A stretch of 64,000 nucleotides of DNA from Eutreptiella sp. 'Long Island Sound 2002' (GCA_964036045.1 OZ038378.1:146134001-146198000); one strand, 5' to 3'; positions 5,950-55,256 are shown, counted from the stretch's first letter. The notes: generated from the sequence alone by a model not told the origin. A program made the numbers and translations.

Positions 5950-6035
5950 TGCTTTTGCGCGAATTTTTTGTACCCCTCCTCCGGGGGTACCCCTCGAAAC
6001 AAAAGCCGTACGCCGGTAACAGGAATTCTTTTTCC
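5950..6035. repeat. Dispersed GGGGTACCCC-containing repeat family; further copies at ~54300-54415 and ~55545-55665
   Basis: Shared motifs GGGGGTACCCC, CCGGCGTAC/GTACGCCGG and AAAAATTC; this copy is inverted relative to the other two. Confidence 0.7.
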
Positions 6036-6098
6036 ACCCCCCCCCCCGCCCCCCCCCCCCCCCGGCCCCTGGTCATGGCCCCGCCGCCGCCTCCTCAG

Positions 6099-7174: not shown

Positions 7175-7270
7175 AGCACTAACCCTCACCCCAACCCTGA
7201 CCCCCACACTGACCCCACCCTAATCAAGACTGACTACTGGGACCACGCTGATGGGGGAGGGATCATCAGG
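7175..7270 (+). repeat. Telomere-like (TAACCC-degenerate) repeat joined to a conserved TAATCAAGACTG... motif
   Basis: Homologous to 26150-26250 (+) and 30825-30900 (-). Confidence 0.7.
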
Positions 7271-7899: not shown

Positions 7900-8600
7900 A
7901 AAAAACCCACTTCCAAGGCTGAGTTTGCGGTGTTTTCACCCCCAAAATGGGTCGTTGGGCCAACTACTTACCCACATGCCCCCACTAAAGGACCCATCCT
8001 GAAGAATCTAGGGGTCAAAGATGGTTGAAAGGTCACTGATAACAGCCCAAACCTGACTGGGCTCGCATTTGGAAAAATGTGTTTTTGACCCCCTTTTGCC
8101 CCCTTTTCAGTACCAAAATGGCCCTTTCCACCCCTTTTTTGGGAACCTGCATGGCGTAATATGCGCCAAAATGGCTCAAAACAGCCCCGAACCACTTGTT
8201 TGAGCACCCGAAGTGGTGTGGTAACAGCTTCGGAAAAACAAACATCTTGCGCTCTGCGGCGCAAATAGGGCATTGTTGGGTGTTGGCGGGGCCGAAATAG
8301 CTTGTAAACGCTCCCATTCATAATTTCTTATCACCACAAAGGTGCCCAATGCAATATATGGCAATCAAACCCGGCAAAGAAAGGTGGAAGGTCATTTCAA
8401 AGCTGATTTTGGCCATTTTGGGGCATCCAATTGGCTTTGTGGGAGCTTGCATGGGCTAATACGGGTCGGAAACCGCTCAAAACAGCCCAAAACCACTCGT
8501 TTGAGTACCCCAAGTGGCCGAGGAACCAGTTTGGAATAAATCAGTGTGGACCCCTTTTTGATCCACATTTGACCCCCCAACTAACCAACCCCAGCACATG
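7900..8600. repeat. Dispersed repeat family with internal GCTCAAAACAGCCC...CCACTTGTTTGAGCACCC subunits; related copies at ~29950-30480 and ~61560-61900
   Basis: Recurrent motifs seen by eye in three regions. Confidence 0.6.
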
Positions 8601-10199
8601 CGCAATTGCCACTCCACAGCCACTACACAGTGCCCCAGGGTCTTTGTTCATCATCTAGATTGCTTCCAGTGCAAATGGCCCCCTCCACGAACATCGTGGG
8701 CACCCCAAATGCGCCAAAATCGCCATCTTTTGACATATTTTGAAATCATGTGCCGCTTGCAACCACCGTTCCTGGCTGCCACTATTGAGTTTCTTGCTCC
8801 GGCTCCTGTAGGAATCATCCACCAAATTTTTGGTCGCGGTGGAATTCTCATTTTGGCCCATTTCACGCGTGCTGGCCTGTGCTGCTGCTTGCTGCTGCTG
8901 CTGCTGCTACAAGGTGTGGCTCCACCTTGCACTCTAAAGAGGGTTGTAAGGCCTAACTGATTCGGCCAGCTCGGTGACCCTAACCTGACCTTAGGATCCC
9001 GTGGGAGTGAAATTCCCTCGGGACTCTCGTCGCCCGTACGCCCCGAAGGGAAGCGGGACAGGATGACTTGGGCAGAGTTGGCCTTGGGGACTTGTTTCGA
9101 CGGCATCCCGTCCCTCTTGTACAGCATTGCGAGGGCTCCAAATACGGACAGCCCAACAACAGCCGTTCCTTTTCAAGCCGAGAAAAGCAGACCTGCCCCA
9201 ATGCCACTGTGCGCTACCCATTCACCTCACCACCGCCGCCCAAACACCCGCATTCACCTCAGCACCGTCCTCCGAACACCAGCAATCACCTCACCACCGC
9301 CCCCAAAACCCGGCAGTCTCTGTGCTGCAGTTGCTCAACCCGCATGTCGGATCTTTTTCTTTGTTACACTGGCCTTTGGGACCAATCGCTTGCTCAGCAA
9401 ACACCTGTGCAACTCCCAAAGCGGCAAGCCTTATTCTCAGCGTGACTTCAAGTCCACTCCCCTGCGACGACATCATTATGCAATGTACTGCGGTGCCCAC
9501 GACAAAGTGCTTTCTGTGTTGAACGTGATGGAAAGTTGTCCATAGACTCCGTGTGTGTAAATACATGTTCGCTGTTCAAGCGTTTGGACGATAGACAACC
9601 CTTCCGCACATCCGAAACACATCCCAGTCTGCATTGTTGTGGTTTGACACATACAAACGAGCGTTGTGAAGGCTTGCCGAGGGGTGTGGCTGAATAAGCA
9701 GCAGCAGAAGGGCATTGCCCAGCCACTTTTGATACAAAGTCCTATTTTGTCCCGATGACAACGGATGTCGTTGGTGAAGGTTTGGCGAGGGTTGTATGAT
9801 GTTTGTGTGGCCAACTGTTGCACGGCGATGTCCCGCGCCCCACGCACAAAGTTGCCCGAAGAAGGAATGCAGTTAGTGGAACGGAGTGGCTGCACAAACA
9901 TGGCTGCGATGCTTTGTGTGATTGCGCAGCACCGTGTGTCTGCACCAAGCGGCCCGGTTGAAGCGCAGGGCATGGTTTTGCTTTGCCGGTCGTGACTCGT
10001 CGCGGCCACACCATCAGGCGCCGGGAAGGCAAAATGAAGTTCAAGGGCCACGGGGGATGGGTACATGCGGTGGCAGGAGGGATGAAAGCCCATACCAATG
10101 TGCACAAGCACACACAATAGCAATGATGAGCCACGTGCGGATGCATCGACGTTTGTACGCCGGGTTTTGCCCAACAGCCGTGATCATTTTTTAATGAAA

Positions 10200-20648: not shown

Positions 20649-23450
20649 GGGTATTTGGTAACACTTAGTACCAAACGAGGTAAAACTTAGTAAAATTTGG
20701 TAAAACTTAGTACAAATGAGGGAAAACTTAGTTAAAAAAAATTCAAATAAAAATTTAGAAAAATGTTTTGTTTTTACTAAGTATAAATACAAAATTTCTA
20801 CCTCGGCCAAACCATCATGCACACCAATATGACATAATATAATTGGGAGGGGGGGGGGGGTCCGGAATGGCAGCCTGGGCTCCTCTGCCTGACCCACCCA
20901 CCCACCCACCCACATCAGAACAAGTTTCCTCAGGGAAAAATCGACATTTGTCAAAGGGGCCCAAAATTGGAGGTCGATTTGAGGTACACAACCTTTTTTT
21001 GGCCGGGCCGTGGCCAACATCAGCTCGGCGGCACTTGGAACAAAATTGGGTGCAATAACAAGAGAGAACCCGGCAAGGCCAGAACCAACAGTAGTGGCAA
21101 CTACTTACAAGTAGTTACAAAAGACACACTTGAAGATCGTATGGCTCGTTTGCCTGCCTCTGCTGGATTCATTGTGCACATCCCAAAGATAGTTTTTTTC
21201 AATTCCCCTTGCAGCTCGGTGCAAAATTCTTGGTCATTTCTCAGTTGACCATCAGCATTTTGGGGGTATTGAGGAGGCACCGCATACCACTTGCGACAGA
21301 TCCACACACCGGGACAGGTGTTACCATCCGCAGCAGCAACAACGGCAAAAGCATCAGCAGCAGCAGCAAGGTTGGCCGCCCAAAATTGGCGCAATCCTAC
21401 ACATATCTCTGATTGACACGAGATAGACGCGTGCAAGGTACAATGAAGAACCCCACACTCAAGGCACGTTATGTGAGGTGTTCCATCACAAAAAAAGCAT
21501 GTGTCACCGGGGTCCGCATATTTGGGTTCGGTGCACATCCAAGCTCCCAATGCATTGTTGGAGTCCTGGGTGTGGAGGCCGGCTTGCAATGATTGTAGTA
21601 CAAAACAGTTTGCGCCATTTCACGCAGCAACCAAAATCTATCAATCTATCCTGTGTCACTTGTAATATGCCCTTGACAATGTGTCGAGACGGCACAATGC
21701 AATGTCAAGAGACATGCCGGATGGCAACTATCACCATCAACCTGCTGGACGAAGGTGGAATGCAGGGGTGCAATTGCAAATGCAAGGGCACCAAAACCAT
21801 CCAAAAAGATTGCCCACTTCTTCCGCTGTTGTGGTTGAATGCCTTCTCGCTCGGCAATCAAATCCACAAAAGCCAACTCGTGGTTTGCCCCAACAACGTG
21901 TGGCCGGTCGCATAGGGGGTCAAACCTAAGGCACAGGTATTCACGTGTTGGGGCAATCAACGACAAGCGGGGCACCCAAGGTGGCCAGTACAAGCGCATT
22001 GAATGCCACTAGGTATTCCCACGGGCCAACTCTTGCTTCGAGTCTTGGGCAAGAGAAAGAGGCTCCCCAGCACAACTACCGTCACCAAAGCAGTCGTCCT
22101 CAACAACCCTTTGGGCCTTTTTTTGGCCACCATTTTTGTAGGGGCTTGCTTGCGACTTGAAGTCACGCACATGCCGCGGCTCACCGCTCAATGCGAGAGG
22201 CCAGCTCAACGCGGGAGGCATTTGTCCACCTCACATGGCCGTACCTAAAAGGTCAAACATCAATGTACTTCCATGAGTACCGCAAAAGCACCGTAAAACC
22301 AGGCTCCTTAGCAAGAAGCCATAGCAAGGTGGCGTCACAAATTCCAAGGGTGCCTTACGTGGCACACACGCAAAACTTTGTTGTGACATTGTGAACGCGG
22401 AGCAAGGAAAAGAATTGTGTCCATGTGACATGGTGACCTTCATTAACAGAGAAGGTCTCCTTAAACCGGTTGGCGCCCCATTTTCGCGAGGACACACCAT
22501 GGTGAACAAAAGGGGCATCACCATCATCCACAAACACTTTGTTGTGTCCCTAGGCAGGGGAGCACATCTTTCAAAGTTTCGCGAATCCCACGCAACTTGT
22601 ATTGTGTGACAAGCTTCAACAAATGTGCCCTTGCCCCAGCTGGTGTAGCACATAGAACCCCCGGAGGTGACTGGCCTACCCTCCCAAACCAACCCAACCG
22701 CCTATGGACGTAATGCTCCCGGGCATGGTCCAAATAATGGGGTGTTGCAGAATAGTGGTCCTCCGATGCAACCCAACCTACTTGAAAAATAGGTGTGGAC
22801 CAATTGTAGGTCTTGGATGTAGGTCCCAGAGGTTTGCATGCACTTGTAGCCGCAAGTCATGGTCTCCAACTATCACTTTCAAATGCTCCCTCAAGTTCTG
22901 TTGTGCATGCCACTAGCACACAAGCCATATAATAGCAAGCCACACTGCATAGGTTGCGTTGATCATTTCGTCGGCACCGTCACTCAATAGTGGTCCACTA
23001 GTGGGCGGATTGGTTACACAACCCCTGCCGTCTGGGGGGTCACCAACGCTTCAGAGCGGGGGGCAGAATCAAAAGTGGCCTACAAGTGGGTAGATTGGCT
23101 ACATAACCCCGCCCGTCAAGGGGGAGTCCCCCATGCTTCAGAGCGGGGAATCAAATCAGAAGTGGCCTACAAGTGGGCGGATTGGCTACGTAACCCCTAC
23201 CGTATGGGGGGGTCCCCGACGCTTCACAACGGGGTACAGAATCAACAGTGGTCCACAAGTGGGCAGATTGGCTACATAACCCCTGCCGTCTGGGTGTCCC
23301 CAAGCCCACAAGTTTTTTTTACTAAGTAATTTACTTAGTAGAAAAAAGTTTTCTACTAGAGGAAAAACTTAGTAACAAAATATCTTTTAAGAAGTTTTGA
23401 AAAGTGGTCAAAAAAACTTTGAAAAAATTTTACTAACTTTTACCAGACCC
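20649..23450. mobile_element. Mutator/MULE-like non-autonomous or decayed element with a 9-bp TSD
   Basis: CTAATCCTC lies at both 20640-20648 and 23451-23459. Termini GGGTATTTGGTAACACTTAGTA and (rc) GGGTCTGGTAAAAGTTAGTA are imperfect TIRs with AT-rich subterminal repeats. Confidence 0.75.
23000..23310 (+). repeat. ~90-100 bp tandem-unit repeat (ATCAGAAGTGGCCTACAAGTGGGCGGATTGGCTAC...); further clusters at 42470-42740 and ~62990-63240
   Basis: Three to four units per cluster, seen directly. Confidence 0.85.
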
Positions 23451-30940: not shown

Positions 30941-32408
30941 GCAGCGATGGGCGGTCCTTAGGGATAAGAAAACTGGTTCCCTAAGGATTGTGTTGCTTAA
31001 AGTAAAGAATTCAATTCATCAATTATTTTTTGGTCTAGACCAAGATGAGCTAGCATATACTGCTCACCATATGGTACTCAAGACAACCTCTCGGAATCAA
31101 GGTCCAAAGCTGACCAGTTCTATGATGATCCACAAATGACTGTGGTAGCAAATCTCACAGGTAGTGAGGACTAGCTGAGTCCTAACCCAGGTTATGCAGT
31201 GGGAGACTGCTACACCCGTAGGATTCCCGCTGTGCATGAGGCACAAAGATTTTCACTTCATCAATGTTAGACAAAGGGGGGGGGGGGGCAGAAAATTGTG
31301 TCCCTTGTGGAGACACCTGTGTGGCAGCACGACTATGCTACAGTATAGGAGTAGGATGAGATGTATGGGCCCTGACCATGCTTGCTGTTTTAGATCTCTG
31401 GGGGATTCTTGAGTGCAGCGCAGCTTTGTTGGGTGGCCATGTTGCGGGGTTTTCACTGCTGCTCAGCGCCCCTAAGTCTGAATTGTGGCATCACTCAGTT
31501 TGTGCATGCAGTGCAGAGTGGCTGCAGCAGGAGCCTGTCCTCATTCAAGCATTCTGCAGTAACACAATGTTAAGGCCCTTGTAGATTCCTGCTGCCTCAA
31601 ACAGCATTGAAAATTCAAACCAGTCCACACATGCTCGTCCACTGGTTCACCCCTCAGGTTCTCATGGGTAAGTCAGCTGAACAAGCAGAATGCTCTTCAA
31701 GGCAGCCCACAAGCAGCTCCTTTGCAGCAAGGTCTCTTGCATAAAGCACGTGTCACAGAAGAGGCATGGCACAGAATATCAGATTGGTTGATATCCGTCT
31801 TGTAGCATGTAAGACCCAATACACAAGCAGACATCATGCCCTAGCATCCCGAATGCCCAGAAATGCCAGCACATGCACAACAATTAAAACGGAGGTCCGG
31901 GGGTGCCCCCGACAATCCCAAAGGCACATGCGTTGAAAATGTCATCTCAATGACTGGGAGGATGCATTGTGTTTGAGGTTGACGATGGGTTGTGTTCTTT
32001 TTTGCAGCCCAGAAAGAGCCGCCAGGAACGTGACTCTGTGGGGCTGCCAATTTTGCAACATGATGGATTGAGCAAAGTAATACTTGACAGCTGCGAACTG
32101 GCGGTGGTTGGCCGGTCACAAATGACAATTTTGCAGGGGCTCAGTGTAGTTTCAAGTGTTCACCTGGGCGTTGCACACACGCTTCTTTCGTGCCGGTACG
32201 GGCCTGGGGCACTGGTCAGCACCCTCTGGAATCACCCAATGTACCTGCGGCTCACTGGTGGCTAAGTGGAAATGTGAAGTTGGGGCTCATTTGGGGCTCA
32301 GTTGTGCATTGCGATGTCTTTGTGCTTGTTTGTTGTGCGTTTTGCATGCTAGGTAATGTGCATTTAATGTTTTTAGAAGTTTTAGATACTCACTTGGTCA
32401 AGGTTCAA

Positions 32409-32582
32409 GGGGGGGGTACTTTTTTTGGCGACGGCTCGGTTGACTGAGCGCCCGACTGAGCCGTCACTGAGCCGTCACTGAGCCGGCTCACTGGGCGCTC
32501 AGTGAGCGCTCAGTGAGCGCGCCAAATGGCTCAGCGAGCGCTCAGTGAGCGCTCAGTGAGAGCTAATTGGGGGCTCACTCAG
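32409..32582 (+). repeat. Left TIR (~174 bp) composed of CACTGAGC/GCTCAGTG palindromic units
   Basis: Aligns over nearly its full length to the reverse complement of 39887-40070. Confidence 0.95.
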
Positions 32583-32654
32583 AGGGTTCCCCCCCCTTTC
32601 CGCCTCTCCTCCGCCCCCCTATCCGCCTACCCATCCATTCCTTCTCGCTCCCAT

Positions 32655-32656
32655 AG
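32655..32656 (+). promoter_or_regulatory. Candidate (trans- or cis-) splice acceptor AG 18 nt upstream of the ORF1 ATG
   Basis: Polypyrimidine tract CCATCCATTCCTTCTCGCTCCCATAG|GTCCT. Confidence 0.4.
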
Positions 32657-32673
32657 GTCCTCTCTTTCACACC

Positions 32674-34560
32674 ATGTCTAATGTTGTCCCAGGCCTGGAA
32701 CCGGCAGCTTCAAAGGCTCTCGCGTCTTTCCTTAGTCGCCCCCGGGTACCTACCGCTTTCACAGAGGCAGCGTACCCGGGGGTGCCTTCGACGGACCTAG
32801 AGCCCTTGAAGCTGTGGGCCCAGCAGCTCCCTGCCCCTTCCCCAGAAGTGGTCCACATCAACGTGTCCGATGTGACCCTTCTTGGAAAGAGCTGGATGCA
32901 CCGGTGCAACCAAATGTTGCGCCAGGTGCATCCAGCTCTTCGTGCCGTACGCTTCCGCTTTCCTGTGGCTGCTGTCCAAGATTTGGTGCAGCAGTCCTCA
33001 GGAAAGCTGATCGGTACCCCCCACGAGTTCGGGACACGGGTTCATGACACCAAAGATCTCCAACACGGTTGGACTTCAGATCTTGGTGTCAGCCACGTGG
33101 CACCCAAGAAGGGACTCCTTGAGCCCCTGCCTTTCGGGGTCGGGGTGGTGTCAGGGGAATGGTGGGAAAGCCTTTCGGCTTGTCCCATCATTCCTGAGTG
33201 GTGCCATGTGGTGCCCGACTACACCACCCCAGCCCTGTACAGGACCAAGGAGCCCGTGTTCCTCCGCGGTGCCGCCTCCCCTCCCCCCTACATCTCCCTG
33301 GCTGCCCCGGTGTTCTCACATGAACTCCCGGCTCATGACCTTGAGTCGGATGAGTCCTTGTGCGACTTGGGGCTCCGGGTGGTTAGGGGGGCGGTAGAGG
33401 CCAAGGAGTGCGAGAACTGGTACCGCATTCTCGTCGACTCCTGCGGCACCCAGCCGGATGCAATTTGGGATCTGCTGTCCAATGCACACTCTCGCGAGGA
33501 GTGCTTGGCTGATCCCAAACTGCCACGGCGCTGGGGTACTCGGCCCGGCAAGCTTATCTCTGTGTTGGGAAGGGACCCCTTGCAACGGGCTAGTCAGCAG
33601 TGCAGTGCTCGCTGGCCCGAGATGAGGGGTCTCTTCCCAACGCAGTGGTCGGCAATTGCCGCCGGGGAAGATGCTAGGGAGCAGACCTGGCATACTGACG
33701 TTGATAAGTTGCCAGGTACGCTCCCTAGCATGGGTGAGCTGCCCGACCATCTCTCAATGATGCTTGTCCTCTCGGACAAGTATCATTTAGAGGTGCACTT
33801 GGGCAGCCACCTGGGTGACCATGACGCTCTGCGGGTCGAGACCTTCGAGTTTCAGCGTGGGGACATGGTTCTCTTTGCCTCCACGCTGAGACATCGGAGT
33901 CTCGCCGCGCTGCCGGGGGTGGGGAAGCAGGTCGTTCTCTTCCGCTTCCTCACCCCCGACGAGCGTCACAAGTGGGTGGACGTGGACGGTTCATCCTTGA
34001 CCCTCTGCCAGGGGCCAAGGATGAGCTGGCTTCACGGCCACGGGGAGACGGGCCGCTGCCCAACCCCAGGGCTATCAGCCACTGGGGGCAGTACTTCGCC
34101 TTCGGCGAGGGACTGCAGGGCGCGGTCGGTCTGCCGCGGTTTGAGCAGCTGGACGACTGGCTGGCCCCGTGGGCCCGTCAGGCCCCGGCTGCCCATACCA
34201 CCCGCTGCTGCTGGCCAGGCCTGCCCTGGACGCCGCCGACCCCATGTGCCACGTGTACGTGGAGGAAGGCGACGTCCTGTGGACAAGCGTGCCATCATGG
34301 CTCGACCTGGGTAACAGTGGACCCGGGGAGGCCGCCATGCTGCAGCAGTATTGGGCCCCCTGCTCCCGCCCCATCTCCGCACAGCAGGCTTTGCTGCTCG
34401 GCTTCTCGTGGCATCGCGGGCCGGAGAAGCGGTGTACAAGGAGCGATGCAGGCGCCGAGGTCCCGCTTTTGATGCGCTGCATCTGCAGCGGCAAGGTGTT
34501 ACTCCCTTCTTCCCCTGCCCTGCAGGATTCACACCGGGGTGTTGGGGGGAATATTGGTAG
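32674..34560 (+). CDS. ORF1: 2OG-Fe(II)-dependent dioxygenase (DSBH; PhyH-like features), 3' part frameshifted
   Basis: DLGLRVVRGAV, QTWHTD (HxD), LEVHLGSH, FEFQRGDMVLFASTLRH (distal His). Codon-like sequence shifts frame at ~33985 and ~34190, possibly again at ~34420. Confidence 0.75.
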
Positions 34561-34890
34561 GGGGCGCGACAAGGTGGTGGTGGGGTGCACCAGGGTGTTT
34601 GGAAAGGTGGGTCTGGGGCTGTGGGCCTGTGGGGCTGTGGGCTGGCAGGGGGTTCTCTGTGTGCCCCACGAGCGGGCTTAACATGTGCACAGGGTGCCCC
34701 ACGAGTGGGCTTAACATGTGCAGAGGCTGGCCAGCGCGTGGGCCTCCTGCACAGGCCGTGCCAGTCTGCTGCTGGCCTTTACGGGGCCTGTATGGGAGCC
34801 TGTACGGGCCCTGTGTGTGGCCTGCATGGGGCTGTGCTCAGGCGGCTCTAGCATCCTGCCGCCAGTTGCAGTTGCCAGTCTGGAGGTGCA

Positions 34891-35086
34891 ACTGAGACCT
34901 GACTGAGCCGTCTGGTGCGCTCAGTGAGCGCTCACTGAGCCATTTGGCGCGCTCACTAAGCGCTCACTGAGCCATTTGGCGCGCTCACTGAGCGCTCACT
35001 GAGGGCTCACTGAGCGCGCCAAATGGCTCAGTGAGCGCTCAGTGAGCCCAATTAGCTCTCACTGACGGCTCAGTGAGCTCTCAGTG
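34891..35086. repeat. Internal array 1 of TIR-type CACTGAG/CTCAGTG units, between ORF1 and ORF2
   Basis: Same units as the TIR, including CCATTTGGCGCG and AATTAGCTCTC spacers. Confidence 0.95.
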
Positions 35087-35088
35087 GG

Positions 35089-35290
35089 GGGCGGCGCGAA
35101 CGTTACCCGGGCGCGAACGTTGACTCTGTGCTTTGCTGCTGTTTGCATCTTTATTTTTGGACCCCCCCCCCCCCCCCCCCCCCCCCCCCCACATTTGCAG
35201 GCTCAATTCCCCCTGCACGAGCCTTTGGTTGATGCAAACGGCAGCAAAACACAGAGTCAACGTTCGCGCCCGGGAACGTTCGCGCCGCCC
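35089..35290. repeat. ~61-bp near-perfect inverted repeat (35089-35149 and 35231-35290) with an 81-nt loop containing poly-C
   Basis: Arms differ by 2 substitutions and 1 indel. Confidence 0.9.
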
Positions 35291-35404
35291 ACCGAAGGTG
35301 CCAGCAGCTCCTCACGACCACCGCTACTGGCAACGCGACGGCAACTGCAACTGGTGTCAGCGACGTAGGAGCCGGTGCCAGGGGCATCGGGAGCGGAGCC
35401 CGCG

Positions 35405-36835
35405 ATGGTGACAGCCGCGGACGAGAGGGCAGCGGCGGTTGACAAGGCTCGGGGGCCGGTGGGCCCATCAATCGCCGACCTGGCCATCGGGTCCCCGGTC
35501 CCTTTTCCCCCGGTGCAGCCACCCCGGGCCAGTGATGTACGCGCGGGCTACTGGGGGCTGTACATTGCCCCGGTCAACAAGCAGCCCGCACCGGCGTACG
35601 TCCTCAACAGGACGGTGAACGTGAAGGGGGTACCGCGGCACTCCACCGAGAGGTGGTATTGGAGCGTCACCCTCAACGCGGTCACCGCCGCGCAGCAAAC
35701 GACGGCCACCCAGATGCACCTGCCGTGCAGGGTGACCCTGTCCGAGGATTGTGGGCTTGTGGCAGGGGAGGGGGGATTTTTTGTAGCCCGCTTTGCCTAC
35801 CGGCTGGGGTCCAAACACTGGTGCTTGGACCTAGCCGTGGGGTCGGAGGAGGGGGGGTTGCTGGCGCGCGCTGGCTCAATTGCTTTTAAGCAGGTGCTGT
35901 CATGGGATGTGCAGGGGGAGGGGTTTTTCTCGGAGGCTTGGCACGCCATGCGTGGCCACGTCTCCACCTTCCGTGCCAGCGCTCTGGGGGGGGACGTCAT
36001 CGACCCGGAGGTGGTCAGTGATGGGGAGGTGACGGATGGGGGGAAGAGTGATGGCGCCCGCAGTGATCGGAGTGCCCGCAGTGGGACCGCAAAAGGAAAA
36101 AAACGGGCAGCCAAGGACAGCAACCCCCCCGCCCCCCCCAAAAAGCTGGCGGGCAAGGGAAATGCAGCCGCACCTCAGAAGGCGGCTCTGGGGAGCCCCC
36201 TTCGTGAGCCTGGGTCACCGGGCACTGTGCCCATGATCGTGTACCGGGAGGCATGCCGTGACCGTGACCAGTTCCGCCAGAAGCGGGATGCTGCCCGTCT
36301 GGCAGCGGAAGCAGCCACCCGTCTCAAGGAGGAGCTGGACACGGTCAAGCGGCAGCGGGACGACCTGCAGGCCAAGCTCGTGGACGCTGAGCGCCAAGGG
36401 GCTGCCACTGAGGCACGCCTCGAGGTGCTGCAGCGGTCCAAGGGCTTGAAGCACATTGAATCTGGGCCGGGGGCTGCATCCCCCTCCCAGTCAGGGGTTC
36501 CGGTTGCACCCCCCGCCACCTACAGCGCGCAGTCCATGCAATTCCTGGCATCGGGACTGTTGGAGTACGCCCACTTGGCCACGCGGCTGATGGCCGACGC
36601 CAAGTCGTCGTGCCAGCAGCTGCAGACCATTGCGGGGCTGGCTCGAACAACCACGATGCCGGACCTGAGCGTGGACAGCCTGACGAAGGTTGAGGCGGAA
36701 GTGTCAACCCGCCTGCAGAACGCCGACCGCCGGTACCGGTCGGATGTGGTGGCGGCTGCTCAGCAGGCTGGCTGGGAGCCACACCCCGTGGTTGGCAGTC
36801 CGGGTTCTCTCCCTGGAACTGCGGCTCTGTGGTAG
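35405..36835 (+). CDS. ORF2: unknown protein with a beta-rich N-domain, basic linker and coiled coil
   Basis: Uninterrupted frame from ATG 35405 (476 aa). Heptad-like RDRDQFRQKRDAARLAAEAATRLKEELDTVKRQRDDLQAKL; KGKKRAAK is NLS-like. The same frame stays open upstream beyond a single TAG at 35366-35368. Confidence 0.75.
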   Translation: MVTAADERAAAVDKARGPVGPSIADLAIGSPVPFPPVQPPRASDVRAGYWGLYIAPVNKQPAPAYVLNRTVNVKGVPRHSTERWYWSVTLNAVTAAQQTTATQMHLPCRVTLSEDCGLVAGEGGFFVARFAYRLGSKHWCLDLAVGSEEGGLLARAGSIAFKQVLSWDVQGEGFFSEAWHAMRGHVSTFRASALGGDVIDPEVVSDGEVTDGGKSDGARSDRSARSGTAKGKKRAAKDSNPPAPPKKLAGKGNAAAPQKAALGSPLREPGSPGTVPMIVYREACRDRDQFRQKRDAARLAAEAATRLKEELDTVKRQRDDLQAKLVDAERQGAATEARLEVLQRSKGLKHIESGPGAASPSQSGVPVAPPATYSAQSMQFLASGLLEYAHLATRLMADAKSSCQQLQTIAGLARTTTMPDLSVDSLTKVEAEVSTRLQNADRRYRSDVVAAAQQAGWEPHPVVGSPGSLPGTAALW

Positions 36836-37420
36836 CCGCTGGACCCCCACTACGTGGTTCGTATATATGTATGGTATATATTGTTGTTGAGCACTTCATG
36901 GTGCTGAAATTTCTTCTGGGGGGGCTGGGGCCACAGATTGCAGCGTGCTATGCACTTCCTGCACCACTTTCTGCCCTGCTGTGTGCCTTTGTTTCACAGG
37001 TAAACGTGCCGTGATTGTGGCCGTGTACCAATTGCAGTTGTATGTTACTTTCAAAATATCGACGGAGCTGAAAATTTTTCAAGGCGGCCAGGGGCCACCA
37101 CTTTCAGCTCTGATGTGCGGCTTTTTTTCACACAAGCCAGTGGCCACAACTTTCAGCCCTGTTGTGGGCCTGTGTTCAAGACCAGGGCCGACTCTGGCCC
37201 CTGTGGTATGTTAATTGCGCCCCTTTTTCTTTCTTTCATTTTTTCAAGCAGGCCAGAGGCCACGTCTTTCAGCCCTGTTATGGGCACGTACAAGAGCAGG
37301 GCAGTCCCGTCTGGCCCCTGCGGTATGTTCAGACCGCAAACAGTCCCTTTGAAAAAAGTATTGGCCTCTTGTGTGGTGCCTGTGTACTGCCTGTCTTTTG
37401 GTGTGCAGTGACTGGGAGGT

Positions 37421-37553
37421 AACTGAGAGCTCAGTGAGAGCTAACTGAGCGCTCACTTAGCTCACTGAGCGCTCACTGAGCCATTTGGCGCGCTCAGTGA
37501 GCGCTCACTGAGCGCTCAGTGAGCGCGCCAAACGGCTCAGTGGGCTCTCAGTC
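37421..37553. repeat. Internal array 2 of TIR-type units, between ORF2 and ORF3
   Basis: CACTGAGCGCTCACTGAGCCATTTGGCGCGCTCAGTGAG... Confidence 0.95.
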
Positions 37554-37762
37554 GGGTGGATGGAATTGTTGGCCGCCACAAACAGGTGGTTGTGGGCAGG
37601 GGGTGCAAGGGGGATGTGCCACCTACCACCAGGGACTGAAAACAGGTGTGTGCCAGGGCTGTGGGGGGGGGGGGGGGGCTGCAGCGCATATTACGGCATC
37701 AACCGGGCGGAGGGGGGCATCAAAGGGGGCAATGGGAGACGCTGCGGGGGGGGGGGGGGCAG

Positions 37763-37910
37763 GATGGGACAAACACCCTGGCGGCATCCTCGGGGGGGGG
37801 GGTATGACGGGACAAACACGCTGGCGGCATCCCCGGGGGGGGGGGGGGGCAAACACCCTGGCGGCATCCCCCCGGGAGGGGGGGGGGATGGGACAAACAC
37901 CCTGGTGCAA
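37763..37910. repeat. Four ~40-bp repeats (GACAAACACCCTGGCGGCATCC + poly-G) upstream of the transposase
   Basis: Direct reading. Confidence 0.85.
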
Positions 37911-38093
37911 CCCCACTACCCCAACCCGACGAAGAGTGTGAATCCTGCAGGGGCAAGGGGGGGGGAAGGCTAGGGACAACAATCAAGGGGAAACAGGTGG
38001 GGGGGATAGCAAAGAGATGTGAAAAGAGGTAAGTGTGCCGCAAGCACGGGGACTGCATGTGGCAATACACCTCTACCACAGGTCCTACACAAA

Positions 38094-39842
38094 ATGCCAC
38101 CTAAGCGTCCCTTTTCCTTGTTGGGAACACGGCGCCAGCGCGCAACCCGGATTGAGCATCTGGAGGCCGCGGTGGCGGCCTCCCTATGTGAGGAATATCG
38201 GGCCGAGCTGCAACCCGATGGTAGCATACTGCTAGTCCCTGAGGACTATAGCCGGCCCACGGACACCAATCCCGACATCAAGTCGGAGGCCTTGCGCGTG
38301 CTGTGGCGGATGCGTAGTTCACAGATGTCGCGCCGCGACATGGCCTACCTGCTGCCCGACCTGCACAGCACCGTTAGCTGGGCCGACGTGGCCCCGTGGC
38401 TGAAGCACCTCAGCCAACCTGCTACCCGGCGGGTTTGTATCCTTGAGGGGGAGTATGAGATGCAAGGGGCGTACTACAATATTGCTGAGCGGCTAGCCCT
38501 GCTCTATGAAGCGCGTGCCGTACGCACACCGGAAGCCTTGCAACCGGGCGCGCAGCGCAACACCTGGGTGACCATTGGCGTTGACGGCACCAACCGGTGG
38601 AATCGGGCCTACGTGCACTGTGCAGTGGCTGCACCGGGTTATGGGCCCACACAGCTTGCTAGCTGGTGGCTGTTCGAGGGTAGCGAGATGTGGGCCACGG
38701 TGTACAGCATGCAATTGGAGTGTGACTTCGATACGCAGCTCCGCGCTGCTACGGCCCTGCAACTGCCGCATGCGGATGGGGTGGCGCGCAGCCCCCTATT
38801 CTTCGTCCGGGCCGATGGCAAGGCCCACATCATGCTGGCCGGCGGGGACGGCTTCACCAAGAAGAGCCCCGGGGCCATGGTGTGCCACTGCTGCGGGGCA
38901 AACCGTGAAACGGTTTTGCGCAAGTTCGGGGGACAAGAGGTTGCCCTGGAAGGAATCAAGGGACATGTACGGCTGACCGGGGTGTTTCGTGACATCCCGG
39001 CGGACCGCCGCATTCTTGACTTCGGTGCGCATGGAGTCATGCGTGTTGCCATTGCGGGGGTCAATGGAATTGTGCGGGGGCTGGTGACCCATGGAGGGGT
39101 ATCGAGGAAGAGTGCGGCCACCATGGTGCAAGGGGTTGTAAACGGGGCACGGAAAGTGGCCCGCACGGTGCGGCCTGGAAAGTGGGGGGCGGACAAGGCA
39201 AATGCCAAAGGACAAGTGCGCATGGAGTTGGGGGCTGCTGCGCACTTTGTCAAGGCCCGGCTGTGGGGCCCACTGTTGCAGCTGGTTGCACCGGTGATTG
39301 GGAACCATCAAGTGGGGGGCAGGCCATGGGTTGATGTGTGCACGGAGTGGTGGGAGGCGTTTGCGGCCATGGCCGAGGTGGCCTGGAAGGACGACTTTCT
39401 GAGTGGTGCAGAGCAACGTGCCTTGCTGCAACGCCAACGGACCATGGGGGCAAGGCACCTTGACCTGGGATGGGGGAAGACCTTGTGGACGCACATGTGG
39501 GTTGACCACATGTATGCGTATGTTGCACGGTGGGGGACCATTGCAAGGTTTAGTTGCTTTGCATTGGAGGGCAGCCATGTGCGACTGAAACGGTTGCTTA
39601 GGAATAGTGGGGGGGTTAGCTTGCTGAACGATAGGTCCGGCTTGCAGTGTGTGGTGGATAACCACACACTAGATGATAACCTCCGCAAGGAAGGTTGGGA
39701 GGTGGAGAGTAGGGCCGTGACCAAGCAAAGGGGGTTCCAACGACGGTGCATGACTTGGTCATGTGCCCGGCGGGAGAGGAAGGGGAGAGAGAACATGGTG
39801 AGGAGGATTGTGGAACGTGCATTGCGACAAAGGACCAAGTAA
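38094..39842 (+). CDS. ORF3: intact RAG1/Transib/CMC-clade DDE transposase (582 aa)
   Basis: VTIGVDG (D, 38583), FFVRADGK (D, 38814), CHCC, RILDFGAH, THMWVDH and FSCFALEGSH (E, 39567). Same order as RAG1 D600, D708, CxxC, H795, H937/H942 and E962. Confidence 0.85.
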   Translation: MPPKRPFSLLGTRRQRATRIEHLEAAVAASLCEEYRAELQPDGSILLVPEDYSRPTDTNPDIKSEALRVLWRMRSSQMSRRDMAYLLPDLHSTVSWADVAPWLKHLSQPATRRVCILEGEYEMQGAYYNIAERLALLYEARAVRTPEALQPGAQRNTWVTIGVDGTNRWNRAYVHCAVAAPGYGPTQLASWWLFEGSEMWATVYSMQLECDFDTQLRAATALQLPHADGVARSPLFFVRADGKAHIMLAGGDGFTKKSPGAMVCHCCGANRETVLRKFGGQEVALEGIKGHVRLTGVFRDIPADRRILDFGAHGVMRVAIAGVNGIVRGLVTHGGVSRKSAATMVQGVVNGARKVARTVRPGKWGADKANAKGQVRMELGAAAHFVKARLWGPLLQLVAPVIGNHQVGGRPWVDVCTEWWEAFAAMAEVAWKDDFLSGAEQRALLQRQRTMGARHLDLGWGKTLWTHMWVDHMYAYVARWGTIARFSCFALEGSHVRLKRLLRNSGGVSLLNDRSGLQCVVDNHTLDDNLRKEGWEVESRAVTKQRGFQRRCMTWSCARRERKGRENMVRRIVERALRQRTK

Positions 39843-39886
39843 GTGCTTATGATGGATGATTTGTGCCCGTGCATGTTAAGTGAGCC

Positions 39887-40070
39887 CTGAGTGAGCCCCC
39901 AATTAGCTCTCACTGAGCGCTCACTGAGCGCTCACTGAGCCATTTGGCGCGCTCACTGAGCGCTCAGTGAGCCCTCAGTGAGCGCCCAGTGAGCCGGCTC
40001 AGTGACGGCTCAGTGACGGCTCAGTCGGGGTGCTCGGTCAACTGAGCCGTCGAAAAAAAGAAACCCCCCC
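39887..40070 (-). repeat. Right TIR (~184 bp)
   Basis: Reverse complement of the left TIR; the outer end reads CACC-G7 on the minus strand from 40074. Confidence 0.95.
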
Positions 40071-40984
40071 GGTGAAATCCTCTTGGCCTAGGGATTGGTA
40101 TCCCTTTGGGGACATTCCAAAACCCCAACCCACCCCCGAAAGCCACAAGTTTTCATATGAAACCCCTTGAAAAACACCACTTAGCCCCAAATGAGCCGTT
40201 TTAGCCCCAAATGAGCCCCAACTTCACAGTTCCAAGTGAGCCGCAGGTACAAAGGTAAGAGGACAGCTGCAGGAGGACAGCAGGGCCAAAAGAAAAAAAC
40301 GAACCAAAGGAAAGGACGCTCAGTATGAGCGACAGGATTGATCCGAGCCACAGACATTCTGGATGACTGCCCAGCGCCCCCAGCACGCAGACGAAATTCG
40401 ACCTCAAACGCAGGAGAAACAAAAAAAGCAGGCCACTAGACGCATCAGGGATGAAGTAACCACTTGCAAGAGCTACACTGAAGTTCTAAAATTTGACGGG
40501 AACAACACATAGTGTTGCTCGCACAAGGACATTGTTGTTGGCGCGAGCCAAAAGCAGTGACTGTTGGTCCTGAATGCACTAGTCGTCAAATGATTCCCCA
40601 ACCTCCACCTCCAGAGCACAAGAAGGGATAAACATGGGTGGCAGCACAGGAATCAGTATCCCTAAAATACCATCCCCAGCCCCAAAGGACAGAAACAACT
40701 TGATATTAAAAGGAACCGCCAAATTCAACGGTTCCAAAAGTTGCAGAAACATTACCTATTGTTGCTCTGACAGGGGGGAGGGGGGTAGTGTTCAATCTGT
40801 GCAAACGGAAGCCCCAGGACATGTTGGCGATGGATACCAAGCGATGGGCATGGGCTGCCCGCTGTGCAGCTGCGGCAAGTGGTGTTCCTCTTTGTAGGAT
40901 CTTGTTTTGACCGGCGCTTGTGGGCATACATTCGGATGCGCCAGCGATGCCTCGAGGAAAGTGTAGCTCGATTGCAGAAAAAAG

Positions 40985-41160: not shown

Positions 41161-44100
41161 ACCCGGAGAAAACACAAGAATCACACAACAACAACCATTG
41201 CTACTAGAGGAGGTGAAGCATATAGCCCCCATGGACATTTTGGGTACCTCCGGCAAGGGTAAAGCAATGTAGCCGTGGCGTGGAGGGTGGTTTTTATACT
41301 CATCGCCTGCGGATGGCCCAAAGAAAGAAATCATGTTGGAGCACACCCACTCATATCAGGTACTCATCATGATTGCAAACAAAAAATGCAATTTGCCCTT
41401 CGGCCTTTGGCAAGCAACTATATTTTGCTATTGGTGCCACCAGCTGCCAAGCTAAAGCCAACGATACCACTTGAGTTCGGTCACCTCGGGCCAACTACAT
41501 TCTTTGCGTGCGACCATAATGGCGTGGAGCCAACTACAAGACATCGGCGGACACACGCTTGGAAATCAAATTAGACGTTGTGTCTCATGACTTCGGCTTT
41601 GCACGCGGAGTGCCAGACTGCGCACAAGCGTCACGGATATCCTTCACACGGTACTTTTCTAGCTCTTCACTAAATTGTTGGTCGTTCACCAACCGATCCT
41701 CTAAGCCCTTTGAGTATGCCTCGGGGACCTTGAATCGCTTCCCACGAATGAGCACCTATGGACGGGCGTCTCACCTCTGGGAGGGTTAGAAGATTCGAAG
41801 CACTACGGGTTGTTGGGTGGACGTCAACATTGCCCTTCACTTACGGCCCATTAGGGGACACATCCCAGGAGTTGAAGGCTGGGGAGGCAGGAGATTCCTC
41901 AAATTTTGGCTCCAAGGAGGAGGAAGCATATTGCCCTTGAGTTGCGAAAGAGGATCCTCTTCATCAAAAAGGAGGGAGCAAGTAGAGGGGAGCGGGGACT
42001 CAGAGTTGGTGGATAGGGCAAGAGGAGATTCTACAGGCTTCTAGCAACTCACGTCATCCTCCCATCCATTGTCTAGGATGGTGCTGGGGACTCAGATGGA
42101 GCGATCCGCATTGATGATGCGCAATGCTTCCTCGATGAATCCTTTCAGAAAGGCGCCAGGATAACATCAATGTCCTCGAGGCTTCCCTAATTGCCAACCA
42201 ACTCCTCACAAAGATGCAACGATTCAAAGCCACATGACCAACCATCCTTTTGAAACCCCAAAGCCCGAGCATGTGTGGAAACACCATTCAACATTTGTGG
42301 GCACCGGCAAGCGCGTTGCCTGTGGTCATAGCAACTCTAGGTGGTGAGGTGGTGGTCGCGGACAGTACATCACCTCTCCCCGCTTACACCACATGTGCAA
42401 CACACAAGCCTTGGCCCAATTGCAATTTTTGAGCCGGAAGCTAAAACGACCAAAAGAGCCAATCAAGAGCCCCAACGCTTCAGAGCGGGGGACAAAATCA
42501 GAAGTGGCCTACAAGTGGGCAGATTGGCTACACAACCCAGGGGTCCCCAACATTGTAGAGCGGGGGACAAAATCAGAAGTGGCCCGCTACTGGATAGCTT
42601 GGCTACATATCCCCTGCCGTCGGGGGGGTCCCCAACGCTTCAGGGCGGGGGACTAAGTCAGTAGTGGCCCACAAAATGGCAAACCGGCTACATAACTTGT
42701 GCCTTCTGGGGCGGTCCCCAACACTTCACAACGGGGGAGAGTTTTTTGCTTTTTTGGCGTAAGTCGCGTATTTTTTTAAAGCATAAATCGTGTATTTTTT
42801 TTAAAAGCGTAGGTGGTATTTTTTTTTGGCGTAGGTCACGTAACTAAATAGCGTAAGTTGCGCAGTTTTTTGTTTAAAAAGTGTAATTCGCATATTTTTT
42901 AAACAAGCGTTAGTGGCGTGATTTTTTTTAGGCGTGGTCACGTCACAAAAAAAGTGTGAGTCAGATGTCATACATTTTGAAGTTTTTTTTTTCCACACTC
43001 AACTTACGCCAAAAGAAATAAACAGCTTGCGCCAAAAAAGGCAAAACAAGCGACTTGCGCGCGCCTAACACGCGATGCCTCATGCCCAAGGTGGTTGTTT
43101 GCCACTCCAACTGTTTGTCCAGTGGTTTTGGGTGGGGCCTTGGGTTTCCTCATCAAGTGGCTTGAACACCAAGACGCCCTGTGCCAAACGGAAACCCTTC
43201 GGTGGGTTGCCGTTGGGGCCATGCGGTCCGGTTTGAGGGCACCAGCATGGCCCCGGCCTTGTGCCAAACTGACTCCGAGCGGGGGGCTGGGGGGAGGTTA
43301 CGCAGATTACGGGCTAGAGGGGCAGCAAGAGGAGAGCGCCGAGGAAAGGTGTGGGCAATACGATCCCCCCGATTGTGACAGGGCGCAGGGGCAGTCTTCC
43401 GTCGCAGATCTGGTCCAGGCACTCGAGGTCAAGAAGACGAGCTGGTCAAGGCTTTTAGTGTCGTTGCGGGGGCAAAACCTCTGCCGGATGGCAGATGTTG
43501 AGCAACAGGACGGAAAAGCGGCTCGCAGTACCCTCCCCGCCGCATGTCCACTCCCCCCCCCCGGGAAGATGCGCCCCCCCACCCACCCCCCTGTGGACGG
43601 TTGCCTGGTGACACCCCCCCACCCCACCCCTTGGGGCACCGTGCGACGCTCATGAGTGATGCGGCGATATGTATCACCACGCTCTGAATAGCCAACAACC
43701 TACGCAAGACGAGGTGCCTCTGTAGAGCGGATGTATATCACGCTCATCCCAGGGGTAAACATCATTGTGCTATCAGGTTCCATCTCCGAGAAGGTGATTC
43801 AAAGTGTCCTGTCAAAGTACAGGGGATACAAGTAGCAGTGCCTCATAACACGCTGACCCGCGACAACACACTGACAAAATTTCGGGGTTGACCAAGTGAC
43901 GGTCCCCCCCACCCCCTGGGGAAGGACAGGGGGGGGGGAGGACAGGGGGGGGGGGGGGTACGTCGAACCTGGGTACTTCTCCGTCGGCGGTGGACAGCAG
44001 TGCAGGTAGGGAACAGAGCACAGGGGTCAAGGGGACTGGACCTGCATAGGTTTGGAAGCAAACAAAGTGAAACAGGACAAGTGTGGGACCAGTGTTGAAA

Positions 44101-52729: not shown

Positions 52730-53351
52730 AGTCGGTTTTCTGTTATACACCAGATGCAATTTTTCAAAAGTGCCGAAAATTGGCTCTGTTATTGGAGGTC
52801 AACACCAAGTGCAAGGTGCACATATCAATGGAAAGAAGCATTGGTGTCATGTGCATGTTTTAACTTCAAAATTGGTTTTCCGAAAGGCATCCAATCTAAT
52901 CCACTGCTTTGCATGGTCGCGGTATTCTGCACGCGGTGGAACTCTTCTATGCAAACTGGAGGTTTTCAACACATCATCAATTCACTTTACCACATTGTTT
53001 TTTTGTCCATGGAAAAGGCTATTGTACATTTCTTGAGGTGACATTTTGTTTCTGTGGACCAATAATGATCATCTGAAGACTGCTGCTTTGTTTTCTTGGC
53101 TTTGTTGCTTTGATTGATTTGATTTGCTACTATTATTCGGAAAATCATTTTGGTCTTGAACCTGAATGGGCAAGTTGTTGCACTGCGTGCGCACTGCGAG
53201 TGCACTGGGTGGGCACTGCGTGCAGTGCCGACACAATGAAACCAAGCCAAGGAGGGAGGGAGGAAACCCCCCCTGCATTTATGCAGGCATCACAAAGGTT
53301 GTCATGTCCTTGGTGATTGGTGGCCGTGGCCAAGCACAATCTACTATTGCG
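52730..53351 (+). pseudogene. Possible decayed CRESS-DNA-virus-like Rep (HUH endonuclease + SF3 P-loop)
   Basis: FLLYTRCNFSK (motif I-like), HINGKKHWCHVHVL (II), YIS*GD (III-like), SLVIGGRGQAQST (degenerate Walker A). Confidence 0.3.
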
Positions 53352-55256
53352 TGAGTGTGTTGGAAGATGGTGGCAGCCTTTTGGGGACATAGGTATTCTG
53401 CCTTGACCCCGTTGAGGCCCAACTTGTAGCAATATGCAGCACTATGTGGGCCGTTACTGATAAGCAATGCTACTGATTCGCGATCACCCGAGAGTGCGGA
53501 TGGAGGGTTCAAGTGCTGGCTTATAAAGAGAACCCAAAAAAGACATTGTTTCCTAGAGATAGCAAGGCAATGACCATGAAGTTGGAATGCGCTTCGGAAT
53601 GTGTAACAACCCACTTGCCGATTTGTTGTATCGTGAATTTACACGACGTCCAGTGGTTCCCCATCATCATAATCCACCATCCACCTAAAACAAAGAACGT
53701 GCAACGAAACTGCGTAAAAATGGGCTAAAATGGCTGAAAATGGGTGAAAATAGGTGGCAATTCAAATGCGCCACATCCTCAATGCACAAGAAGCGTAAAA
53801 AAATCTGTTATGGAACAACCAACTGGTGAAAAAAGGCCAAAACTAGGGTTCAAGTAGTTGCCGACATACAAAAGTTTGCACTGCGTGCGCACTGCGGGCG
53901 CATTGCAGGCGCACTGCGTGCACGGCATTCCCAATGTATTTAGGAGTTGATCACGAATTTTCGTGTTTCATATCAGCAATTCCACTTGGATACAAACGCG
54001 TCAACAGGAGCTCCAATCCTCAAGAACAAGAGGTTACAATATACCTCTGGCAATGTTGCATGGTTGCAATGGCTAACCAAGATGAGCGGGAACGGATTGC
54101 ACCGACAGAGCAAAATCGATTGACAAAAAAACTGCTCTGTTGGTTTATGGAGAAACATTGTCGAATGCTGGCCATGACAGCATTTGTCAACCTACGGCGC
54201 ACTGTCATTCTGTCCTACTCCATACCCTGGCATGCACCTGCCAAATGGTACCACATCTGCTCCAATAGACCATTATGCCTCTGCCCCTCCCAGGGGGGGG
54301 GTAGAAAAAAAATTCCTGGTACCGGCGTACAGCTTTTTTTTCGGGGGGTACCCCCGGAGGGGGAGGGGGGTACGAAAAAAAATTCGCGCAAAAATTTTTT
54401 CCGGACCCCAAAATCTGAAATTTCCTTAAGTCTACCCCACGTGTTTGGGTTTGGAAGGTGCAAGGAGGGTATTTTTCAAAGTAACCATGCATATTTCAGC
54501 CGATATGGGTGGTGTTTGTGTTTAAGGGCACAAAGACCCCCGGTCTGTTCCGGCTGCAATGCAGCGCCCCACCCTGGCCTCTTATCGGCAGGAAAGAGTC
54601 CCCAGATAAGGCAATACACCCTATCTGGGGCGAGAAACCGAACCAGCAGCATTGAAGGACAACGGTGATTGATGTCCATTCTGGCCGTTCTGCAGGTTGC
54701 CCAAGCCTACAGTGGACCCCACAATGTCATGTCCCCATTGCCTTCTCGCATGCTGGTTGATGACCGCCACGCCACAATGGCTTGCCAACAAAGATTGGTT
54801 CTCAATGAGGCTACGGTTGTGTGTTGGTGTGTTAGTATGTCTCTATATGTGTGTGAATGGTGCACATTGTCGCACTACGCCGTTCTTGCGCGCACATCGC
54901 CAAAAAAAATTTGATCGCGGACGACATCTAAAAAGTCTGCGAGAAGGAAAAGCAAATAACACGTACAATTGAACCCAAATCTTGATGGATTATTGTTAAT
55001 TGGACCCTCTCCCTCTCATGCTTTCTTCGCCCTCCCTCGCTGTGAAACAAACAAACAAACAAACAAGTGGAACACCCCACATTTCACATTGTGTACCGCA
55101 ATTCCACTCCCGGGTTTCCACAACGGGCCACCAAACGCTGGTGGCCACGCGGTTCCACGCTACGCCCACACTCATTGCTGAGTGGGGCACCGCTAGCATA
55201 GCAAGGCTAGCAGCTCCGCTTGAGGAGTAGATGGATCGGACACAATGCTCAATGTG

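Follow-up and report, generated by a model that had tools for sequence, protein, structure and literature searches.

V(D)J recombination descends from RAG1-fold transposases, whose known diversity is, to our knowledge, small and centred on animals and fungi. The clade to which these transposases belong, CMCT (CACTA/Mirage/Chapaev/Transib), includes EnSpm/CACTA, Mirage, Chapaev, Transib, Plavaka, ESTA, Lanisha and RAG1 (PMC12730594). According to the same source, fungal PlavakaA (Kojima 2025, PMC12730594) is an exception to the 5'-CA..TG-3' rule of the clade, with 5'-TGT..ACA-3' termini and target-site duplications (TSDs) of 2 bp, and the fungal EnSpm, ESTA and PlavakaB elements carry TET/JBP dioxygenases. 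In En/Spm, the subterminal repeats are bound by the protein TNPA, which can act as a block to RNA polymerase, and the transposase of CACTA elements is conserved, in contrast to the repeats and their binding protein, which diverge (PMC2613891). Here we describe a three-gene DNA transposon of this clade, found in a 64-kb stretch of DNA from Eutreptiella sp. 'Long Island Sound 2002' (GCA_964036045.1 OZ038378.1:146134001-146198000), hereafter the window, in which all positions are counted. A first-pass annotation of the window had proposed a RAG1/Transib-like transposon with a dioxygenase gene and with palindromic arrays on both sides of each gene. Other loci with copies or relatives, designated L001 to L014, were compared with the window.

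The transposase and the ends of the element

Three long open reading frames (ORFs) on the plus strand lie between the arrays, at 32674-34314, 35375-36835 and 38019-39842. The last of them, ORF3, gave an AlphaFold2 (AF2) model with a predicted local distance difference test (pLDDT) score of 88.6 and a predicted TM-score (pTM) of 0.81 from a 58-sequence alignment. When this model was compared with the PDB by Foldseek, ranks 1-48 consisted solely of RAG1 from mouse or zebrafish, BbRAGL from amphioxus and Transib from Helicoverpa (HzTransib), with E-values from 3e-10 to 2e-5, TM-scores of 0.5-0.6 and about 520-690 aligned columns, while the next matches were orders of magnitude weaker (P element, 5e-3; Hermes, 0.04). 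The model places D164 on beta1, D241 after beta4 and E492 on a helix of an RNase H-like fold, and these columns are kept in the family alignment together with C264-x2-C267 and H467-x4-H472. C267 and the first His of the zinc motif are nearly invariant in a 20-sequence ORF3 alignment, down to 28% identity. Judged from the predicted structure, ORF3 has the complete RAG1/Transib architecture of a DDE transposase and carries the C(2)C/H(4)H zinc motifs known from CMCT elements, and the fold proposed in the first-pass annotation was recovered over the whole length of the protein.

The likeness to RAG1 and Transib is visible at the fold level only. Sequence searches of the PDB with ORF3, including a profile search, gave no meaningful match and none to RAG1 or Transib, and no Pfam model, Plavaka, Transposase_21 and RAG1 included, matched ORF3 or ten of its relatives (11 members) at E<=1. 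We know of no structure of CACTA, Mirage, Chapaev or Plavaka in the PDB, so the top matches to RAG1 and Transib are to be read as kinship at the level of the clade and not as membership in Transib. Membership in Transib was considered and rejected, as the 5-bp TSD, the CAC termini and similarity at the sequence level were all lacking. An exhaustive profile search with ORF3 returned 337 representative proteins (50%-identity clusters) at E<=1e-3, 51 of them at E<=1e-30. None of the cluster members has an NCBI or UniRef name, and the family was met in environmental data only. No relatives were found in IMG/VR or in GTDB prokaryote genomes, and a scan of JGI metagenomes gave one 2.3-kb contig without context. 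The distant ORF3 relatives from other metagenomes (L006-L009 and the cluster members) all sit alone on contigs of about 1.1-2.6 kb, which fits either assembly breaks at flanking repeats or transcript-derived contigs.

The features of the element are collected in Table 1. No second copy of it was found elsewhere in the window. Its termini, 5'-TGTAC...GTACA-3', were fixed by four other copies, L001, L003, L011 and L014, with identities of 90-98.5%. L001, L003 and L014 are collinear with the window element at 95-98.5%, and L011 matches at the left end; the left terminus is common to all four, and the right one was also found in L001, L014 and L003. Collinearity with L001 runs from 32240 to 40251, and the sequences outside both points are unrelated. 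Diverged copies retain TGTA..TACA, the left end of L002 being TGTATCTACGG and the right end of L005 being ...CCGTAGGTACA. By global alignment, the left and right 345 bp form imperfect terminal inverted repeats (TIRs), in which conservation is good over the outer 60 bp or so and over the array part, and loose in the middle.

Table 1. Coordinates of the transposon features in the window, and of retroelement-type neighbourhoods at other loci.
Feature	Position	Strand	Basis or remark
Whole transposon, 8012 bp	32240..40251	+	Collinear copies; homology stops exactly at both end bases
Left terminus 5'-TGTACCTGCGGCTCAC..., outer part of the ~345-bp imperfect TIR	32240..32300	+	Same in five copies
Array 1, left subterminal, 11-bp phased units CA[C/G]TGAGC and GCGCGCCAAATGGC motif	32443..32583	.	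Pattern counts, TRF, inverted repeats
ORF1, probable 2OG-Fe(II) oxygenase	32674..34681	+	One frame 32674-34314 in the window copy; Pfam, hhalign
Array 2, internal palindrome between ORF1 and ORF2	34890..35086	.	Pattern counts, TRF, ssDNA folding
ORF2, orphan protein	35405..36835	+	Mechanical ORF start = GTG 35375
Array 3, internal palindrome between ORF2 and ORF3	37400..37556	.	Pattern counts, TRF, ssDNA folding
ORF3, predicted RAG1/Transib-fold DDE transposase, 582 aa, intact in the window	38094..39842	+	AF2, Foldseek, motifs
Array 4, right subterminal, inverted counterpart of array 1	39875..40030	.	Pattern counts, TRF, end alignment
Right terminus ...GTGAGCCGCAGGTACA-3'	40190..40251	+	Comparison of copies
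Retroelement-type ORF neighbourhoods	L003 15193-15876; L013 3812-5596, 14204-15346; L014 17005-21749		

Directly outside the ends, matching 2-bp sequences were found in four copies: AA in the window (32238-32239 and 40252-40253), TC in L001, CA in L014 and AG in L003, where the reading assumes that the right end was inverted together with its flank. The chance probability of four such pairs is about 1.5e-5. Since the flanks are identical within each copy and differ between copies, the TSD is 2 bp long and has no fixed sequence. The first-pass annotation had placed the ends at 32406 and 40074, with CA(C)-starting termini and TIRs of about 180 bp. According to the other copies the true ends lie about 170 bp further out on each side, and they begin and end with 5'-TGTA..TACA-3'. 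The outer arrays are indeed mutually inverted (32455-32582 against 39887-40014, 128 nt, 91%, extended by 32411-32453 against 40028-40070), but they make up only the subterminal part of longer imperfect repeats: as the other copies are collinear out to both end bases, the arrays lie about 200 bp inside TIRs of about 345 bp.

Close homologues of ORF1, ORF2 and ORF3 came almost all from one ENA long-read metagenome assembly, ERZ25074135 (contigs to 7.8 Mb, about 40-50x), and a few short JGI contigs also carry them. Clusters at no less than 90% identity held 83+60 sequences for ORF3, 91+23+17 for ORF1 and 70 for ORF2, and the assembly contains well over 100 copies. Two copies are rearranged. L014 (7522-12158) is a deletion derivative without the segment corresponding to window 34570-37957, so that ORF1 directly adjoins ORF3, and in L003 (11714-13399) the right end is inverted together with about 1.2 kb of flank. 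Rearrangement mediated by the arrays was considered for both and rejected, the breakpoints being outside the arrays. Near-identical copies with TSDs, changes in array length and the deletion and inversion derivatives together show a recently active family. The earlier view, that the transposon exists in many copies and that its three genes occur together on one strand, was upheld by the full-length copies and by the lineages described below; in the tests run, no known family matched across the length of the element.

Palindromic arrays and their conservation

The 11-nt sequence GCTCA[C/G]TGAGC occurs exactly 20 times in the window, always within four clusters, where 0.02 occurrences were expected from shuffled sequences. 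An 11-nt period was reported by Tandem Repeats Finder (TRF) for all four clusters. The unit is palindromic except for its central base, which gives it an orientation, and in each array the units point both ways, are spaced 11, 21-22 or 31-32 nt apart and have the GCGCGCCAAATGGC motif scattered among them. The clusters stand around the three plus-strand ORFs as the first-pass annotation had it, an observation that is genuine and goes far beyond what chance would produce. Both internal arrays are almost perfect palindromes, the arms lying at 34951-34998/35000-35047 (94%) in array 2 and at 37464-37507/37509-37552 (91%) in array 3. When folded as single-stranded DNA (ssDNA) and compared with shuffled controls, they gave z = -13.2 and z = -11.0, respectively. 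No terminus-like sequence was found beside the internal arrays, and TGTAC termini occur within the element only at 32240 and 40251. Young copies differ from each other in array length by steps of 11 and about 32 nt.

Other repeats were recorded in the same intergenic regions. A 44-nt inverted repeat (95%) surrounds a C31 run at window 35106-35274, between array 2 and the start of ORF2; units of about 47 nt are repeated downstream of ORF2 (36962-37285); and a G-rich 43-nt tandem repeat of 3.8 copies with G10-15 runs lies upstream of ORF3 (37750-37926).

More distant loci allowed the layout to be followed through several lineages. In L002 and L004, ORF3 is about 62%, ORF1 45-60% and ORF2 about 40% identical to the window proteins, and the order ORF1-ORF2-ORF3 is kept. 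L002 has arrays at all four of the positions known from the window and L004 at three of them, the array between ORF2 and ORF3 not having been found there; the repeat unit of both is the variant GCTTTCACTGA/GCGTTCACTGA. L005 (54%) has kept ORF2, array, ORF3 and array in this order with the unit GCTTGCAGTGA. L012, a family of the same genome with 31% identity, shows array, coiled-coil ORF, array, transposase and array, with 22-nt units of the TTGGCGCGCGCCAA type and no ORF1 homologue. In L006 (41%), which comes from another metagenome, an 11-nt ACTAGGATCCT array lies upstream of the transposase gene. Gene order and gene-bracketing arrays thus persist at 40-64% protein identity with a unit variant of its own in each lineage, and by these comparisons the repeat unit co-varies with the lineage, while ORF1 looks like a cassette added in one branch.

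Ratios of non-synonymous to synonymous substitution rates (dN/dS) between lineages were 0.15-0.21 for ORF3, 0.25-0.30 for ORF2 and 0.30-0.37 for ORF1, rough values from tblastn-guided codon pairs with saturated dS. Judged by these ratios, all three ORFs have evolved under purifying selection. Low dN/dS together with the conserved architecture indicates that all three genes encode proteins and that the arrays around them are an old, maintained trait.

Accessory genes and genomic surroundings

Intact copies of ORF1 have about 620 conserved residues, with an ORF of 669 aa in L001 and a conserved C-terminal domain at about aa 440-610. Compared with L001, the window copy has lost 1 bp at each of two places, near 33986 and near 34164, and its frame is broken after residue 438 or so. 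The only family matched was PF13640 (2OG-FeII_Oxy_3, a family of 2-oxoglutarate (2OG) and Fe(II) oxygenases), at E 0.0045-0.05 and 14.9-18.4 bits against a cutoff of 27, and in 4 of 20 ORF1 members. In hhalign, the ORF1 core aligned with 79.3% probability and E 1.5e-5 to a reference alignment of seven members, i.e., E. coli YbiX and six phage, including cyanophage, 2OG-Fe(II) oxygenases; with YbiX alone the probability was 17.7%. The predicted metal and 2OG residues are H340-T-D342 followed by H407 and K418 (33691-33927). H407 falls on YbiX H158, the invariant His, and K418 on R168, the invariant 2OG-binding Arg; the GDxVLF strand is also aligned, and WHTDVD is placed on the invariant H/D columns, H96/D98, the motif being interrupted by a gap of two residues. 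No match to Tet_JBP was found at E<=10 for ORF1 or its pieces. Searches of the PDB with the ORF1 sequence and profile gave nothing meaningful, and tblastn of the core against phages gave noise only. Relatives of ORF1 beyond this genome may be missed, as the exhaustive protein search covered ORF3 only.

From these alignments we consider it quite probable that ORF1 carries a PKHD/prolyl-hydroxylase-like 2OG-Fe(II) oxygenase domain. Of the dioxygenase suggested at first, what stood is thus a probable oxygenase, with the triad and the basic residue aligned in hhalign; an affiliation with TET/JBP was not detectable. The alternative is that the HxD...H pattern is a coincidence and ORF1 an unrelated accessory protein. 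Such a reading would agree with the Pfam score far under the cutoff and its presence in so few members, with the low hhalign value for YbiX alone, with the empty PDB searches and with an AF2 model without a usable fold (pLDDT 32). However, PF13640 was the sole family matched, the seven-member template was recovered with the distal His, K418 and GDxVLF in register and the H/D motif aligned across its two-residue gap, and the alignment of ORF1 is so shallow, with an effective sequence number (Neff) of about 1.3-1.4, that this alone explains both the weak scores and the failed model. We therefore regard a non-oxygenase ORF1 as unlikely, though still deserving some weight. Modification of DNA by ORF1 is speculation.

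ORF2 consists of a globular N-terminal part, an acidic and Ser-containing stretch, a basic stretch rich in Lys, Pro and Ala that begins near aa 240, and a coiled coil spanning roughly aa 297-356. No Pfam domain matched it, and searches of the PDB with the ORF2 sequence and profile gave nothing meaningful. Matches to histone H3 tails at E of about 0.4-1 were rejected as compositional. A YAG|GTCCT sequence was seen 15-20 nt before the ATG of both ORF1 and ORF3 (window 32645-32673 and 38070-38093), at ORF1 after a CT-rich tract. The sequence is a possible acceptor for splicing or trans-splicing. When the other loci were searched with a strict pattern, no match appeared, and no dinoflagellate or Euglena spliced-leader relics were found.

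About 300 kb of flanking sequence contained no recognisable host gene, an indication of a large eukaryotic genome rich in repeats. Ten other long ORFs in the window had no Pfam matches, no tRNA was found, and no Rfam family was found in the window or in five loci. Retroelement-type ORFs with Exo_endo_phos, GIY-YIG, zf-CCHC, RVT_1 and RNase_H domains were seen near other copies. A separate small element occupies window 53179-53925, where two direct arrays (53179-53225 and 53877-53925) of about four 11-nt GCACTGCGTGC units each flank a segment of about 650 bp. This segment holds an 11-nt periodic run of the GGCTAAAATGG type at about 53715-53760, resembling the sequence upstream of the distant transposase on L008. 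In L012, at 5451-9905, a 4.4-kb insertion is nested in a transposase gene of the distant family, and it is both bounded and filled by palindromic arrays of 11-nt CGAAATTCGTA units. Several transposon families of this genome seem to share a general habit of carrying arrays with a period of 11 nt. Tandem repeats of other kinds were also recorded: a 24-nt repeat (CCAATCACCACCAACCGCCAACCG) with 48.7 copies and 99% identity at the edge of the window (1-1168), and one 85/86-nt family with two arrays, 22984-23294 and 42540-42738, on opposite sides of the transposon.

Mechanism, alternatives and known systems

Taken as a whole, the element is likely an autonomous-type, recently active cut-and-paste DNA transposon of a repeat-rich eukaryote, for which we propose the following mechanism. 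ORF3 would cleave at the TGTA termini by a DDE mechanism of the RAG/Transib type. The palindromic 11-bp units, one helical turn apart, would be bound by a dimeric DNA-binding protein that the element encodes, in parallel to the binding of TnpA to the subterminal repeats of En/Spm. The best candidate for the binder would be the fast-evolving basic and coiled-coil ORF2, proposed by its position, composition and fast evolution only, and an alternative would be the N-terminus of the transposase. The terminal arrays may help to pair the ends of the element. The internal arrays are unlikely to be cleavage sites because no terminus-like sequence stands beside them, and their most likely role would be that of boundaries, protein-bound or cruciform, which separate three transcription units and allow autoregulation. 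ORF1 may be a passenger cassette, as it is absent from the most distant family (L012), which retains the gene-bracketing arrays. A role of ORF1 in counter-silencing, by analogy with fungal TET-carrying transposons, is a guess only.

Several observations weigh against this proposal. ORF2 has no DNA-binding domain recognisable by Pfam and no relatives outside this genome, the exhaustive profile search having covered ORF3 alone, and no similarity to it could be detected in the coiled-coil ORF of L012. ORF1 is frameshifted in the window, so this copy may rely on others; its Pfam score is under the gathering threshold and its fold model unusable. The selection estimates come from codon pairs with saturated dS. 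A named family for the element may already exist, since the comparison with known families covered Pfam and the PDB.

Two other accounts of the arrays were weighed. The locus could be a composite of three single-gene transposons inserted side by side, each internal palindrome representing two abutting ends and the cassettes being separately mobile. In each internal array a right-type array does seem to be joined head-to-head to a left-type one, and the distant ORF3 relatives are always alone on contigs of about 2 kb, a circumstance that assembly breaks at repeats explain equally well. But the internal arrays lack the outer TIR segment of about 200 bp and the TGTAC termini, the arms of the palindromes abut with a 1-nt gap that leaves no room for ends and TSD, and the three-gene order with arrays is kept in lineages at 40-64% identity, so that we find a composite very improbable. 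A better case, still an improbable one, can be made for a member of a named CMCT lineage such as Plavaka, Mirage or EnSpm, whose arrays are functionless subterminal repeats spread inward by unequal recombination. The 2-bp TSD and the 5'-TGT..ACA-3' ends match PlavakaA, and the array-length steps among copies show slippage or recombination. Against this, the 11 family members had no match to any Pfam transposase, and the internal arrays occupy the same intergenic positions in the lineages examined, the 31% family included, which argues for maintenance. Both the composite and the functionless arrays are less likely than arrays that serve as boundaries between transcription units.

A wider interpretation, to which we give little credence, goes beyond the boundary function. 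The element could stand for a branch of RAG1-fold transposons in aquatic protists that has the rank of a superfamily and has not been named (337 clusters or more at 50% identity), in which modular gene cassettes would be insulated by phased palindromic operator arrays read by a fast co-evolving dimeric protein encoded in the element, and in one lineage a captured oxygenase would act on DNA or chromatin at the arrays to escape silencing by the host. Whatever the rank of the family, it is large, diverse, invisible to Pfam and environmental only, and it adds a distant branch for reconstructing the evolution of the RAG1 core. That every gene is surrounded by arrays, a trait kept down to transposase identities of about 30%, suggests that a multi-gene DNA transposon can partition or regulate its genes in a manner not yet described. 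A non-TET oxygenase passenger, if true, would extend the theme of transposons with oxidative enzymes beyond fungi.

Among known systems, RAG1, ProtoRAG (BbRAGL) and Transib are matched by the predicted fold of ORF3 over its whole length, and the spacing D..D(+23)CxxC...Hx4H(+20)E resembles that of RAG1, whose core residues we take to be D708-C727/C730...H937/H942-E962. The element differs from RAG1 and Transib in its 2-bp instead of 5-bp TSD, in TGTA termini (TGTACCTGCGG) in place of CAC heptamer-like ones, in having no heptamer/nonamer organisation like that of recombination signal sequences (RSS), in a sequence identity of about 10-12%, in the absence of a RAG2-like partner and in its three genes. 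With the CMCT clade as a whole it shares the DDE triad on an RNase H-like fold, the C(2)C/H(4)H motifs and a TSD within the range of 2-5 bp; most members have 5'-CA..TG-3' termini, whereas the ends found here are 5'-TG..CA-3' (TGTAC..GTACA).

En/Spm, likewise a CMCT element and a two-component system of the transposase TnpD and the repeat-binding TnpA, resembles the window element in having short repeats in both orientations, which form an array of about 150-200 bp some 200 bp inside each end, and in combining a conserved transposase with a fast-diverging second protein and repeats (PMC2613891). Unlike En/Spm, the element has no CACTA termini and no 3-bp TSD, carries additional arrays between its genes, and encodes an ORF2 not similar to TnpA; its genes are separate intronless ORFs, whereas those of En/Spm are alternative splice products. 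The fungal TET-carrying transposons are likewise cut-and-paste elements with an accessory 2OG-Fe(II) oxygenase, sometimes with a third protein, but the best, weak affinity of ORF1 is to PKHD/prolyl-hydroxylase-like oxygenases and not to Tet_JBP.

PlavakaA shares the 2-bp TSD and the form of the ends, and its sister lineages carry a dioxygenase passenger (PMC12730594). It differs in that ORF3 had no match to the Pfam Plavaka model at E<=1, although a remote relation to Repbase Plavaka is possible, and in that the oxygenase found here is PF13640-like. PlavakaA is known from fungi; the genome considered here is rich in repeats and has contigs of Mb scale, and relatives occur in aquatic metagenomes. 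The accessible passages of PMC12730594 make no mention of 11-bp arrays that bracket genes. The combination of traits, for which the first-pass annotation knew of no described element, is therefore partly foreshadowed by the TET/JBP-carrying fungal CMCT elements and by the ends of PlavakaA; the layout of arrays around the genes was not found described in the accessible parts of these accounts. The element is a CMCT-clade DNA transposon with accessory genes, and what sets it apart is that each gene lies between conserved palindromic arrays phased at 11 bp.

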